Shown here in pieces: positions 3,851 to 29,400 of a stretch of 64,000 nucleotides of DNA. This DNA is from Octopus sinensis (taxonomy: Eukaryota): positions 82,460,001 to 82,524,000 of the forward strand of contig NC_043004.1 of the NCBI RefSeq assembly GCF_006345805.1. Reading direction: 5' to 3'. Positions within the stretch are counted from its first letter, which is position 1, and each line of letters opens with the position of its first letter. Both the position numbers and the translations under genes were made by a program. Below the pieces are notes generated by a model. It saw only the letters and a program-made list of their open reading frames with translations. It did not search any database and had not been told where the DNA came from.

Positions 3851-4458
3851 CGCACACTCACATACACACACACACACACACATACACAAACATATATATA
3901 AACATATATACAGAGAGAGAGAGAGGAGAGAGAGAGATAGTGGAGAGAGAAAGAGATAGATAGATATATAGACACACAAAAGCTGACATACAGATATGCA
4001 TGAGTGTATGTATGCATGATATAGTGTCCGAATATTGCCGATGGGTTGCCTGAAATAAACATTTCATCTGGTAGAGTCTCTTGTCTATAGTTTTCGATTT
4101 CCATGGTCTATAAGTAACTGGGATGACGGCATTTGAGTTAAGGGGATAGTTGTCGGTTGCTGAGTCCCCTTCTTACAATTTTGATGGAGAGCATGAGTCG
4201 AATACTTCACTTCACAATAGTACCTGATTGAGATTTTATTGTATCAACCACGAAGGGAGCAAAGTAAAGTGGGCGTGATTGTGATTTCAAATTAGAATGT
4301 ACAAAGGACGAACGAATACAACTAATTTGTACGACGCCCCATCGTCGCCCACTTCGAAAGAATTTAATAGGACCAATAACGAAGAAATGAATGCGTTTCT
4401 CCATCTTGGTTTGAGTTGAATATTGCTGACAATGCTAAATATGCAAGAGTTTACTTAC

Positions 4459-5127
4459 CTTGTTATACAGTATTATGCCTTCATGGAAATACTTGAGCAT
4501 TGCAAATGTGCTGCCAAGCAAGAAGCATACCATAAAAGCTATCTCCTCTATCTCCAGTAGATCATTTAGTGTTCCATATATCGTACAAAAAATAGCGCAT
4601 GGGACATAGAATATGACTGTTGATAACTGGAGCTGAAATTTTTCACTGACCAGTTCGAGTAGTTTACAAAGTATTCGATGTTTTTGTGATATCTCGGCTA
4701 TCAAATGACTTTTAGCTTTGCATTTATTTATAGAATTTCCCTGTTTTATATCATGCATACGTTTCGGAAAGCCTTCATTAAGTTTATCGAACTCCTGTTT
4801 CACGATCTCCATAAAAAAAACAGGGACTATATACTCGTTATAACGCATTAAAACAAGTGATAAAGTCAGCATATAAGTTGTTACTAGAATTGGTAGGAAA
4901 AGGTAGTCAGAGCTTTTCGCTGGGAAAGGAAAGATCTGTAGAAAATCCGTATATGTAATATAAAACGGTAAAATGATGTAATAGATAAATTTTGAAATGC
5001 AATTTACCATGAGAAGAACCAGACGCTTTCGTTTATGCTTATTCCACAGCTTAGAATAAATTTTCAGGCGATCAGCTGGTAATTGGTAATTAATAAAACA
5101 GCTGGTAATTGGTAATAAATAAACAGG
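4459..5127 (-). pseudogene. GRL copy A, 5'-deleted (lacks the N-terminal ~115 codons, TM1-TM2)
   Basis: Homologous to copy C from FINYQLPADRLK to IILYNK|GTAAGT. At ~5127 the sequence jumps directly into the internal part of the upstream SINE (about 610 bp missing relative to C). Confidence 0.8.
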
Positions 5128-5280
5128 TCTGTCTTTACTTTCTGAGTTCACATACCGCCAACTTTGACATTGCCTTTCATCCGTTTGATGTTGATAAATT
5201 AAGTACCACTTGCGTGCTGTGGTCGATCTAATCGACTAGCCCACCCCACCTAAAACCTCGGGGTCTGAGTCTAGAGTAGA
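5128..5280 (+). mobile_element. Partial SINE (3' part of the family upstream of each minus-strand GRL)
   Basis: Matches 19741-19892. Confidence 0.7.
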
Positions 5281-6014
5281 AAAGAAAATTTCGAGAAAAA
5301 GCGTATCACAATATATTAAACAATGTACTGAATGATGTTAAGTGTTGGTAAATTTCATACTTCGTTAATAGAGCAATCCCAAATACAATAACATGTATAA
5401 ACATATATATTATATATATATATATATATATATATATATATATATATATATATATATCATATATATGTATGTATTATGTGTGTCTGTATGTGCGTGCGAC
5501 TGTGTAAAGTATTACTTGCGATTGGTTGATTTCAATAGGCGTTGTCTCTTCCTTGTCTCATCGTTGTTATGAGACAAACCTGATTTGAGTAAATGCGTAA
5601 TAGATTGTTATTGATCGATTCTTAATTAACTGATTGGTTTGTATTGGACGGCAATAATACTTCCGTTGTACATTATAACGATCAACATTGATACGCTTGC
5701 TGCATGGAAATACGCACACACACATATGTATATATATATTATATATATATATATATATAATATGGTTATCAGTAATAATATAGGGTGAAATTAATTAATT
5801 TGGAATAATCATTAATTTCACCAAGTAGATTTCGGCATGTAAAAGCTCCATTCGAGGAAAGTTAAAGTAATACTAAGTAATTAAGGGTTAGCAACGATTT
5901 GCCTCACCACGAACGAATTTAGAAATAGCAGTCAAAGAGTTATAGCTATTCTTTCTACTTTTAGAAATATATATATATCAATATATATAAATATATATAT
6001 ATATATATATATAT

Positions 6015-25708: not shown

Positions 25709-25733
25709 TTTTGTTTAATTATATCGGAAAAAG

Positions 25734-26124
25734 GCAGTGAGATGGCAGAAAGTTAGAACACAGGGCGAAATGCTTAGCAGTATTTCTTCTGCTGTTACGT
25801 TCTGAGTTCAAATTCCGCCGAGGTCGACTTTGCTTTTCATCCGGGGTTGATTAAATAGGTACCAGTTACGCACTGGTGTCGATGTAATCCACTTAATCCG
25901 TTTGTCTGTCCTTGTTTGTCCCCTCTGTGTTTAGCCCCTTGTAGGTAGTAAGGAAATAGGTATTTCGTCTGTCTTTACTTTCTGAGTTCACATACCGCCA
26001 AGGTTGACATTGCCTTTCATCCGTTTGATGTAGATAAATTAAGTACCACTTGCGTGCTGTGGTCGATCTAATCGACGAGCCCACCCCACCTAAAACCTCG
26101 GGGTCTGAGCCTAGAGTAGAAAAG
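25734..26124 (+). mobile_element. Compound tRNA-derived SINE upstream of GRL D
   Basis: Same sequence family as 19505-19892. Confidence 0.75.
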
Positions 26125-28401
26125 AAAATTTCGAGAAAAAGCGTATCACAATATATTAAACAATGTACTGAATGGTGTTAAGTGTTGGTAAATTTCATAC
26201 TTCGTTAATAAGAGCAATCCCAAATACAATAACATGTATAAACATTTATACATATATATATATATATAATTATATATGTATTTATTATGTGTGTCTGTAT
26301 GTGCGTGCGACTGTGTAAAGTATTACTTGCGATTGGTTGATTTCAATAGGCGTTGTCTCTTCCTTGTCTCATCGTTGTTATGAGACAAACCTGATTTGAG
26401 TAAATGCGTAATAGATTGTTATTGATCGATTCTTAATTAACTGGTTGTTTTTTATTGGACGGCAATAATACTTCCGTTGTACATTAGAAGCGATCAACAT
26501 TGATACGCTTGCTGTATGGAAATACGCACACACACATATGTATATATATATATATATATATATATATATATATATATATATATATATATATATATATATA
26601 TACATATATATATATATATATATACATATACATATATACACATATGTATATATATATATATATATATATATATATGTATACATTTTATTCTTTTACTTGG
26701 CTCGGCTATTAGACTACCGCCATGCAGAGGCCTTGAATGTTTCGTCAAGTGAATCAACGTCAGCACTTATATTTTTCGAAATCCGGGTACCTAATCTCTC
26801 CGTTCCGCTTTGCCGAACCGTTTATTTTACGGTGTCGTAAACACAGCAAAATCGGGGTTGTCGAGTGATGGTGGCTGGGACAAACACAGACACTCAGATA
26901 CATACATACGTACATACATGCATACATACATACATACATACATACATACATACATACATACATACATACATACATGCGTAATAGATACATAAATACATAC
27001 ATAATACATATATTTCATCGGCTAAGTATTTTCAACGTAATGTTTGGAGGTGTAACGAAAAGGAAGATCCTTTATGCGTTGAAAAAACTCACTAAATCTA
27101 TTTAAGATATGAGATACCCTTATTAGTGTTCTCAGTGAAAATATAGCTGGTACGGTTTAAATTTCGGAAGAAGTCGTACAACTGAAACAGGAACTTAAAA
27201 ATTGTTTCCAAATGTATTTTTGGAAGGATTAGGCTGTTGCACTAAAACGATAGCGAGGAACGTGGTAAAAGAAAAGCCAACGCCTGTTTTGAAGCTCAAA
27301 CGGAATGTGCCATTTGCGGCGATGGACTAGATCAATAAAGAGCATGATAGAGTAGAATTTCTAGCTATAATTGGAAAAGACGGTCATTCATACTAGGCAA
27401 CTGCGACAGTCTGTACAAGGAAGAAAATGTACTAAAACAAGAGTGTATACGGACGTTTCAACTGGATTAGAGAAATATTTACCCGAACACAGCTCTCCAT
27501 TACCATGCCAGACGAAGTGTTCTGAAAGCTAAATGGAGGAAAATTTTTTCTCGAAAATAGTCTTACTACTATTACGACCAACAGTCACTGCTGCTACTGC
27601 CATTTCGGCCACTGGTCATTTCCTTATTTTATTCGAACACATAAGACAGCTATTATGCTTCCTCCCGACAAAAAAGAACATCACGTGAATTATTTTGAGA
27701 CCAGTAAGAAACAATTATGAACTTTTTTATTACACTTAACTTTTTAAAATATTTTTGATAAGGTTCATTTTTCAAGAAGAACCGAAGCATGTAAAATTTC
27801 TAAGAAAATTAAATCTTATCTTATATAGTGGCGTTTTCAAACTTCTTTTTTATAAATATTTACCCACTCGTATACGCCCTACACTTATGATAAATATATA
27901 TATATATATATATGTAGATAGATATATGAATTATTTGCGTAATGAGATTAAAAAAAAACAAGCCTGAATAGATATTAGAGCATTTATAGATAGAATGTCT
28001 TACAGCTGTTTCTAGAATATTAATTAATAATAATATCCTTTTATCCATGGGCTATAACGAACTGGGATAACGGCATTTATCTGAATGGGATATTTGTTGG
28101 TTGCCGAGTCCAATACGTGCAATACGAGAAAACGAGTCGAATACTTCACTTCACAATAGTACCTGATTGATAATTTACGGTATCGACCCTGAAGGGAGCA
28201 AAGTAAAATCGAAGTGATTGTCATTTCAAATGAGAAATTACAAAGGAAGAAGAAATAGAGCTAAGTAATTTGTACGACGCCCCATCGTCGCCGACTTCGA
28301 AAGAATTTAATAGGACCAATAATGAAGAAATGAATGCGTTTCTCCATCTTGGTTTGAGTTGAATATTGCTGACAATGCTAAATATGCAAGAGTTTACTTA
28401 C

Positions 28402-29400
28402 CTTGTTATACAGTATTATGCCTCCATGGAAATACCTGAGCATTGCAAATGTGCTGCCAAGCAAGAAGCATACCATAAAAGCTATCTCCTCTATCTCCAG
28501 TAGATCATTTAGTGTTCCATATATCGTACAAAAAATACCGCATGGGACATAGAATATGACTGTTGCTAACTGGAGCTGAAATTTTTCACTGACCAGTTCG
28601 AGTAGTTTACAAATTATTCGATGTTTTTGTGATATCTCGGCTATCAAACGACTTTTAGCTTTCCATTTATTTATAGAATTTCCATGTTTTATATCGTGCA
28701 TATGTTTCGGAAAGCCTTCATTAAGTTTATCGAACTCCTGTTTCACGATCTCCGTAAGGAAAAGAGGGACTATATTCTCGTTATAACGCATTAAAAGAAG
28801 TGATAATATCAGCATATAAGTTGTTATTAGAATTGGTAGGAAAAGGTAGTCAGAAGCTTTCGCTGGGAAAGAGAAGATCTGTAGAAAATATACATCTTTA
28901 ATAAAAAACGGTAAAATGACGGTATAGCTAAATTTTAAAATGCAATTTACCATGAGAAGAACCAGACTCTTTCGTTTATGCTTATTCCACAGCTTAGAAT
29001 ACATTTTTAGGCGATCAGCTGGTAACTGGTAATTAATAAAATAGGTTGTTTTCTCAAATTGGTCAGGACATTGTGTTGAAAAATATATACAGTATAACAG
29101 GTGAAAAAATCTTAAAAAAGAAATAAAGACAGATGCAATAAACAAACCAAACTTCTTTGATGAATTAATCGTCCCAATGAATACAAAATATCGCAGAGCG
29201 TCAGCCAATATCATAGCATAGAGTAAACAATAAGATATATATGAAATGCGATCGAATAATCCAAAGGAATTCCAAGTATTTCGTGTCATTTTCATGCGGC
29301 GTAGAGGGAAGTAATCAGGTGGCTTTAAGGAATGAATAAAATCATAAAGGTTACATTCTTTTGTACGTCCTTTCTTCTCATCTGAAGTCGAAGACAACAT
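28402..29400 (-). CDS. GRL copy E, long first coding exon (333 codons)
   Basis: Intact ORF, about 86% identical to C by manual count. AAG|GTAAGT donor at 28401. Confidence 0.8.

Follow-up and report, generated by a model that had tools for sequence, protein, structure and literature searches.

A candidate variable-first-exon array of GRL chemoreceptor genes in Octopus sinensis

We analysed a 64-kb stretch of the 2.7-Gb genome of Octopus sinensis (C8:82460001-82524000; hereafter the window, whose coordinates count from its first letter, eight-digit positions being those of C8). This eukaryotic DNA is rich in A and T and contains satellites and pieces of transposons, and long exons of the gustatory-receptor-like (GRL) chemoreceptor family stand in it in tandem. 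The minus-strand locus, which occupies 103-29406 and a further 3 kb to the left of the window, is best read as a GRL variable-first-exon array with functional alternative splicing, a reading to which we give a probability of about 0.68. That the locus has the variable-first-exon form is supported by its exon anatomy and by the predicted transcripts of sister arrays, from which we infer the use of the open first exons C, D and E. The original prediction, that variable first exons are joined here to shared constant exons, finds its support in a single-copy minus-strand tail and in the RefSeq models of the sister arrays.

Long first exons, their donor and the constant exons

Stop-to-stop open reading frames (ORFs) and tblastn located eight GRL long exons in the window, five on the minus strand (A-E) and three on the plus strand (F-H), each about 1 kb long except the truncated copy A (Table 1). 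As had been noted, every one of them ends at a phase-0 GTAAGT donor (8/8 copies), preceded by AAG on the minus strand and by TCG on the plus strand, and reading through the donor gives VS and a few further residues before a stop (VSKLLHI-stop, VSNIIIL-stop, VSYSCV...). The hexamer occurs only 31 times in the window, both strands counted, so that its presence at the homologous codon in all eight copies is not due to chance; the same donor ends five further first exons elsewhere in the cluster to which the window belongs. The minus and plus subfamilies are only about 20% identical, yet their alignment is collinear and places both donors in one column, and profile comparison with hhalign links the two with 96.3% probability (E 1.7e-9, 252 columns). 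On this comparison the two exon types are homologous, and the claim that the donor holds its place despite very low identity between the subfamilies stands. Both strands carry at least two tandem long first exons, each intact one having an ATG and the homologous donor. The deletion of 1 bp that had been noted directly after the donor hexamer of copy B is present, B reading GTAAGTAACT where C reads GTAAGTAAACT. In copy A, the start codon and codons 1 to about 120 have been removed by a deletion, which measures about 617 bp against C.

The exons to which these donors could be joined were sought with proteins related to the window exons. A profile of the window exons, run against 1.84 billion representative proteins, returned 27 relatives, most of which end just past the donor, in a VS... 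peptide produced by read-through. Four of them (P0010, P0015, P0019 and P0027) extend for about 71-78 residues more, and their tails, used as tblastn queries on the window and the 200 kb to its left, gave collinear minus-strand matches just downstream of copy A. These define one set of three phase-0 exons, of 69 nt, 90 nt and a final exon with the seventh transmembrane segment (TM7) and the stop codon, which begins 4.3 kb downstream of copy A. When 12,779 six-frame ORFs were ranked by a hidden Markov model (HMM) of the tail built without the minus exons, exon b came first (E 4e-4), followed by exon a in second place. The 85-aa minus tail on its own matches positions 315-362 of the 370 of Pfam 7tm_7 (17 bits, E 0.004), and it also matches the C-terminus of Pfam Trehalose_recp. 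Exons a and b have the same lengths and the same boundary positions in five other, plus-type tail sets of the cluster. All three tail exons have polypyrimidine-AG acceptors, the K/S junction with the first exon is in frame, and the introns leading to exon a would measure 4.3 kb (A), 10.7 kb (B), 18.3 kb (C), 24.5 kb (D) and 28.2 kb (E). The constant exons of the minus set had been expected to the left of the window; this holds for exons b and c, but exon a lies inside it. The TY..QF signature that had been expected of TM7 is not what the minus tail carries, which reads SYAILAYQT instead.

The search for tails covered 264 kb, that is, the 64-kb window and the 200 kb of its left flank (L001-L020). 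No TM7 exon was found in the spacers by tblastn with the four tails, nor by tail HMMs run over six-frame ORFs of at least 12 aa in the 264 kb, and a second copy of exon a, b or c was found in the 264 kb neither at the protein level (HMM) nor at the DNA level (blastn-short). One shared 3' exon set thus lies downstream of the minus array and none between its first exons, in agreement with the absence of TM7 exons that had been noted by eye in the spacers. Elsewhere in the genome no paralogous minus tail was detected at the sensitivity of the genome-wide minus-tail search, and tblastn gave no further long exons in the 200 kb left of the window. These results bear on the idea that the copies are ordinary tandem genes, each with a very divergent TM7 exon of its own inside its repeat unit. 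Short divergent exons are in principle easily missed, but none was found in any unit; the units are 92-96% identical, so that private tails should resemble the real one, and positions 1-3083 of the window, which hold exon a, are unique and lie outside the repeat units. We regard private tails as extremely improbable.

In the mechanism that we propose, each intact copy would supply its own ATG, the N-terminus and TM1-TM6, and the shared tail would supply 69 nt, 90 nt and the final TM7 exon with the stop. Transcription would begin upstream of one first exon, whose phase-0 GTAAGT would be spliced to the first available acceptor, that of exon a. First exons lying downstream of the chosen one would leave with the intron because first exons lack a 3' splice acceptor of their own. 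Exons C, D, E, F and G would each be transcribed, from a promoter of their own, and spliced as variable exons. The products would combine a variable, ligand-facing TM1-6 part with a common TM7a/TM7b, which in solved insect odorant (OR) and gustatory (GR) receptors form the pore and the anchor. Exons F, G and H would head a much larger plus-strand array that is built alike and for which the one tail detected is 261 kb to the right.

Table 1. Long first exons, constant exons and repeats of the window, and minus-strand sister arrays on C8. A slash marks a splice boundary; negative positions lie left of the window.
Feature	Position	Strand	Remarks
Constant exon c	window -2866..-3012 (L020:6988-7134)	-	IFGTVVSYAILAYQTSS...PII-stop; acceptor ATTTCAG/; TM7 SYAILAYQT and stop; 2.87 kb left of window
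Constant exon b	window -1451..-1540 (L020:8460-8549)	-	90 nt, LTFFINRLSNARIGLCIGRFFLVNHSSVLG; acceptor TTCCAG/, donor /GTATGT; 1.45 kb left of window
Constant exon a	103..171	-	69 nt, SHGILQEIYKSNIGDITPEAKME; acceptor TTGTGATTTTAG/ (ends TTTTAG/), donor /GTAAGT; phase 0 on both sides
First-exon copy A	4459..5103	-	nearest the constant exons; 5' truncated; AAG/GTAAGT intact, donor 4458
First-exon copy B	10864..11867	-	1 substitution and three 1-bp indels relative to C, frame broken; AAG/GTAAGT
Candidate variable first exon C	18481..19485	-	open; AAG/GTAAGT, donor 18480; 18.3 kb upstream of exon a
Candidate variable first exon D	24713..25714	-	open; 3-bp in-frame deletion relative to C; AAG/GTAAGT, donor 24712
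Candidate variable first exon E	28402..29406	-	open, 335 codons; candidate ATGs 29400, 29295; AAG/GTAAGT, donor G at 28401; 28.2 kb upstream of exon a
Candidate variable first exon F	44800..45765	+	open; ATG 44803; TCG/GTAAGT at 45766
Candidate variable first exon G	51772..52734	+	open; ATG 51781; TCG/GTAAGT, donor 52735
First-exon copy H	61932..62889	+	pseudo-exon: 1-bp frameshift and in-frame TAG; TCG/GTAAGT kept, about 62890
Minus-unit repeats	6315-6774, 13919-14392, 21200-21529; 7613-7963, 15234-15595, 22393-22795		minisatellite and (ATAC)n
Minus array, 8 exons	83258164...83182266	-	tail 83177924/83173929/83171912
Minus array, 4 exons	83159772...83111747	-	tail 83108083/83106060/83101843
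Minus array, 2 exons	83087112, 83073813	-	tail 83070953/83067865/83060342

Sister arrays and family assignment

Genome searches, for which a plus-type tail, G, C and the RefSeq proteins served as queries, place the window in a GRL cluster of about 0.8 Mb on C8 (82.46-83.26 Mb), in which one set of exons a, b and c stands behind each run of long exons on the same strand. Between 82504818 (F) and 82782041, the plus array that begins in the window has at least 15 first exons that are full-length and open and about 17 that are broken. The closest tail detected on the plus strand is at C8:82785443-82788356 (exons at 82785443, 82786386 and 82788288), 261 kb right of the window. The DNA up to that point was covered by genome searches only. 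At their sensitivity, which reaches down to about 47% identity, these searches found no plus-type tail between C8:82504818 and 82785443, and the minus tail, which is 33% identical, escaped them. Three short plus arrays with tails of their own come next (82805762, 82830727 and 82862733), and three minus arrays are listed in Table 1.

Isoforms annotated by RefSeq, which are computational predictions, join distal first exons to these tails. For the array of F, G and H, predicted LOC118764608 X1 (P0047, 389 aa, full length) takes its first exon from 82748771-82749736 and X3 (P0015) from 82766331-82767281, which is 100% identical to L034. Their tails are the same in 71 of 71 residues and map to the 82785443 set, and X1 passes over three intact first exons on the way. 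In predicted LOC118764607, isoforms X3 and X4 both join 83242701-83243669 to exon a at 83177924 through a 65-kb intron that spans six first exons, and differ by an alternative acceptor within exon a. Predicted LOC118764606 (P0019) begins with the first exon at 83087112 and skips the one at 83073813. The models splice at exactly the homologous GTAAGT site. The expectation that the plus-strand constant exons lie right of the window is supported by the tail shared by LOC118764608 X1 and X3 that was detected there; that F and G join it as well we infer. Extending the argument, the whole cluster may consist of at least eight variable-first-exon arrays with one three-exon tail each, the F/G array being one transcription unit of about 280 kb with at least 15 intact variable exons, a proposal that we hold tentatively and at somewhat less than even odds. 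If it is true, the F/G array would exceed in size every alternative-first-exon chemoreceptor locus so far described, and it would be the first such locus from outside the arthropods.

Exon b (90 nt) shows a nucleotide identity of 93-99%, synonymous sites included, among the tail sets L021, L022 and L023 (C8:83173932-, 82786386- and 83106060-). The introns on either side of these copies cannot be aligned (about 50% identity), the first exons of these sets are only about 40% identical at the protein level, and the differences examined between the L022 and L021 copies are synonymous. This pattern suggests exon-restricted gene conversion or a constraint at the RNA level; if the proposal for the whole cluster is true, it would hint that a mechanism connected with long-range splicing acts on the RNA or through gene conversion. 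Separately, the tail sets P1, P2 and P3 (L022, L024 and L025) arose by recent segmental duplication, their flanks being 96-98% identical upstream and 86-97% downstream.

Pfam 7tm_7 matches exon G alone with 22.0 bits (E 1.2e-4, profile positions 7-293 of 370), below the gathering cut-off of 26.6, and none of C, D and E gives a Pfam match as a single exon. Spliced relatives from the cluster exceed the cut-off (P0019 with 31.7, P0046 with 30.3 and P0010 with 27.4 bits). As single long exons give no match above threshold, the family was assigned through these relatives, the hhalign comparison and the tail. The order of exons (first, 69 nt, 90 nt, final, all in phase 0) has the same positions in the minus and the five plus-type tail sets. 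The TM7 motif of GRs is TY-x5-QF (PMC6150509). The minus tail (SYAILAYQT) and the plus-type tails (TYILVVIQT) share the form [ST]Y-x5-QT, in which Y and Q are retained, T is replaced by S in the minus tail and F by T in both.

We modelled the plus type through P0047, a relative of G and F (39-45% identical). The AlphaFold model from a 14-row alignment has a pLDDT of 67.3 and a pTM of 0.66, with low confidence in the tail part, and a single-sequence model (pLDDT 42.7) was unusable. In a Foldseek search of the Protein Data Bank (PDB), the best 15 matches of the model were all insect OR, GR or Orco chains (probability 0.94-1.00, TM 0.32-0.60). The first exon ends at residue 318 of the model, in a cytoplasmic extension of the TM6 helix, and exons a-c make up TM7a and TM7b. 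At the sequence level, phmmer with P0019 found no match among PDB sequences. A word-indexed protein search with G had no matches other than a Logan ORF and a chimeric model from O. vulgaris, and no contigs encoding P0010 or P0015 are on record. The O. vulgaris model, the 'hypothetical predicted protein' P0001, combines a transposon-like ORF (40157-40654) with the middle of G (51772-52734) and the start of H (61932-62200), which indicates that gene models for this family are unreliable.

The transcripts might instead read through GTAAGT and end 7-30 codons further on, giving single-exon, six-transmembrane proteins without TM7. The sole support for such products is that short read-through tails with stops exist. 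The donor hexamer and its phase are kept across subfamilies of 20% identity and at five other loci whereas the read-through peptides are not, the RefSeq models splice exactly at the donor, and TM7 lines the pore in the solved insect ORs and GRs that are the best structural matches. The Logan contigs in which read-through ORFs occur have repeats at their ends, pointing to genomic DNA rather than to transcripts, and we consider single-exon products very improbable. These contigs had been candidates for unspliced transcripts; in four runs they end in a (TA)n run and a repeat resembling a short interspersed nuclear element, and they were set aside as probable genomic unitigs that are uninformative on RNA.

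State of the minus set and other elements of the window

The minus repeat units are young tandem duplicates, and several observations on them weigh against a functional array. Among A, C, D and E, dN/dS is 0.65-1.29, which is uninformative for purifying selection on C, D and E. Between C and E the exon has diverged by 6.8%, against 1.4% in the 358 bp past the donor. More generally, the intron of about 360 bp after the donor (18123-18480, 4087-4458, 10497-10863, 24342-24712 and 28044-28401) differs by 0.6-1.4% and the exons by 2.2-6.8%, the block of low divergence also taking in the 3' third of the exon. With exons no more conserved than their flanks, recent history looks neutral, mosaic or diversifying, and not purifying. 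Both copies closest to the tail are defective, A truncated and B frameshifted, so that the locus, if it works, must skip them. No C-type protein was found among the 1.84 billion representatives, and no annotated or assembled product is on record. A shared promoter motif did not emerge either, no 8-10-mer outside low-complexity sequence being present in at least five of six regions upstream of plus-type exons, which is a weak test. Finally, an open long exon at C8:82875742-82876743 (-) is 60% identical to C and lies about 0.4 Mb from it. The genome search detected no tail downstream of this exon, the nearest tail sets being on the other strand or upstream, so that an open first exon need not have a visible partner.

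Much of this would be expected of a locus in decay, in which a four-exon GRL gene underwent recent tandem duplication of exon 1 and part of intron 1. The upstream copies would then be unused, A would be truncated, and the locus would be a pseudogene with young copies in which stops have yet to arise. In its favour are dN/dS values around 1, exon divergence at or above that of the flanks, the truncation of A and the frameshifts of B, the lack of a C-type record among the representative proteins and the orphan C-like exon elsewhere in the cluster. Yet no stop has arisen in E over 68 substitutions (simulated P = 0.034), D carries a single indel, which is 3 bp long and in frame, and each of the three tail exons is intact and has canonical splice sites. 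RefSeq predictions use distal first exons in three sister arrays, and dN/dS near 1 fits young chemoreceptor paralogues under diversifying selection as well, which do show such values. We therefore think decay unlikely, though a serious contender, and retain the functional variable-first-exon array as our reading of the minus set. The C-E differences are patchy, stretches of 17-18% standing beside stretches of 0-3%, which points to mosaic gene conversion or local diversification.

The number of copies itself may be affected by the assembly. Over 7.2 kb, unit B (5967-13183) differs from unit C (13570-20877) by 68 substitutions and 82 small indels, mostly of 1-2 bp, a ratio more like that of unpolished long reads or a doubtful duplicate than of evolution. 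Unit B might accordingly be a false duplicate or an unpolished copy of unit C, leaving four real copies rather than five; within the exon the contrast is that of 1 substitution to three 1-bp indels. The differing flanking junctions and the regular tandem layout speak for a real unit, and just 11 of 51 one-base gaps fall in homopolymer runs. An artefact of this kind seems to us rather improbable and does not affect the main conclusion. The frameshifts of B may nevertheless be assembly noise.

The spacers had been described as mostly transposable-element debris. Some transposable-element pieces are there, but the spacers consist largely of minisatellites and (ATAC)n, each minus repeat unit holding a minisatellite of 106-129 bp and an (ATAC)n run of about 90-100 copies. 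Proline/serine-rich and 'YVCMYV' ORFs were rejected as genes, being translated minisatellite and (ATAC)n repeats. Between the two arrays, a 608-bp inverted repeat (32307-32914 and 35276-35883, 99.5% identical) surrounds ORFs at 33894-35311, one of which has a weak GIY-YIG match; the element at 32307-35883 is probably a young mobile element. A tandem repeat at 40923-42812 has a unit of about 547 bp in copies 99.8% identical, and long low-complexity runs of trinucleotide type adjoin it at 43259-43929. Between G and H, the ORF at 53752-54540 (+) matches the endonuclease-reverse transcriptase domain Exo_endo_phos_2 (E 5e-10) and is a fragment of a non-long-terminal-repeat retrotransposon.

Comparison with insect Gr loci and other first-exon arrays

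It is characteristic of insect Gr and Or loci that alternative long first exons share the TM7 exons to which they are spliced. In insect Gr loci, the long alternative first exons have in common three short final exons, with introns of phase 0-0-0 (PMC6175461), and alternatively spliced loci include Drosophila Gr28b, Gr39a and Gr23a and Blattella germanica Gr60a-m with 13 first exons (PMC6175461, PMC2204066). The octopus array resembles these loci in its probable membership of the 7tm_7 superfamily, in its tandem long first exons that end at the same phase-0 donor, in its shared short final exons, again three in phase 0-0-0, that encode a conserved C-terminus with TM7, and in its mixture of intact and pseudogenic first exons. 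It differs in its host, a cephalopod mollusc rather than an arthropod, and in the TM7 motif, where it has [ST]Y-x5-QT in place of TY-x5-QF. Should it be a single unit, the plus array would have at least 15 open first exons over 280 kb as compared with 13 in Blattella. Unlike that of insect Gr loci, octopus splicing is known from the predicted RefSeq isoforms of sister arrays only. GRL genes of animals outside arthropods have been treated by Robertson 2015 and Saina et al. 2015, as cited in PMC7746228, and the searched literature, which did not cover Robertson 2015, yielded no description of alternative-first-exon GRL arrays in octopus, other molluscs or non-arthropods.

Our analysis would thus place in a mollusc an arrangement already familiar from insect Gr loci. 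The octopus GRL repertoire is large and mostly unannotated or mis-annotated, as read-through ORFs, chimeric models or partial isoforms. Studies of chemoreception in octopus have until now concentrated on nicotinic-like chemotactile receptors, and correct models, made of a first exon and the 69-nt, 90-nt and final exons, are a prerequisite for studies of GRL expression or function.

The octopus array would work like the vertebrate protocadherin (Pcdh) alpha and gamma and UGT1A loci, with tandem variable first exons before shared constant exons and the intervening ones removed as intron. These loci encode unrelated protein families; the likeness is a functional analogy and not one of membership. 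Each Pcdh variable exon has a promoter with a conserved element and is chosen stochastically, whereas the weak test made here found no conserved upstream element in octopus. If the proposal for the whole cluster is true, promoter choice could give octopus sensory cells a receptor diversity of the protocadherin kind. Overall, the occurrence of the insect architecture in a cephalopod, with the same three phase-0 introns, would mean either that the GR/GRL gene structure and this design are equally old or that the structure repeatedly predisposes loci to it.

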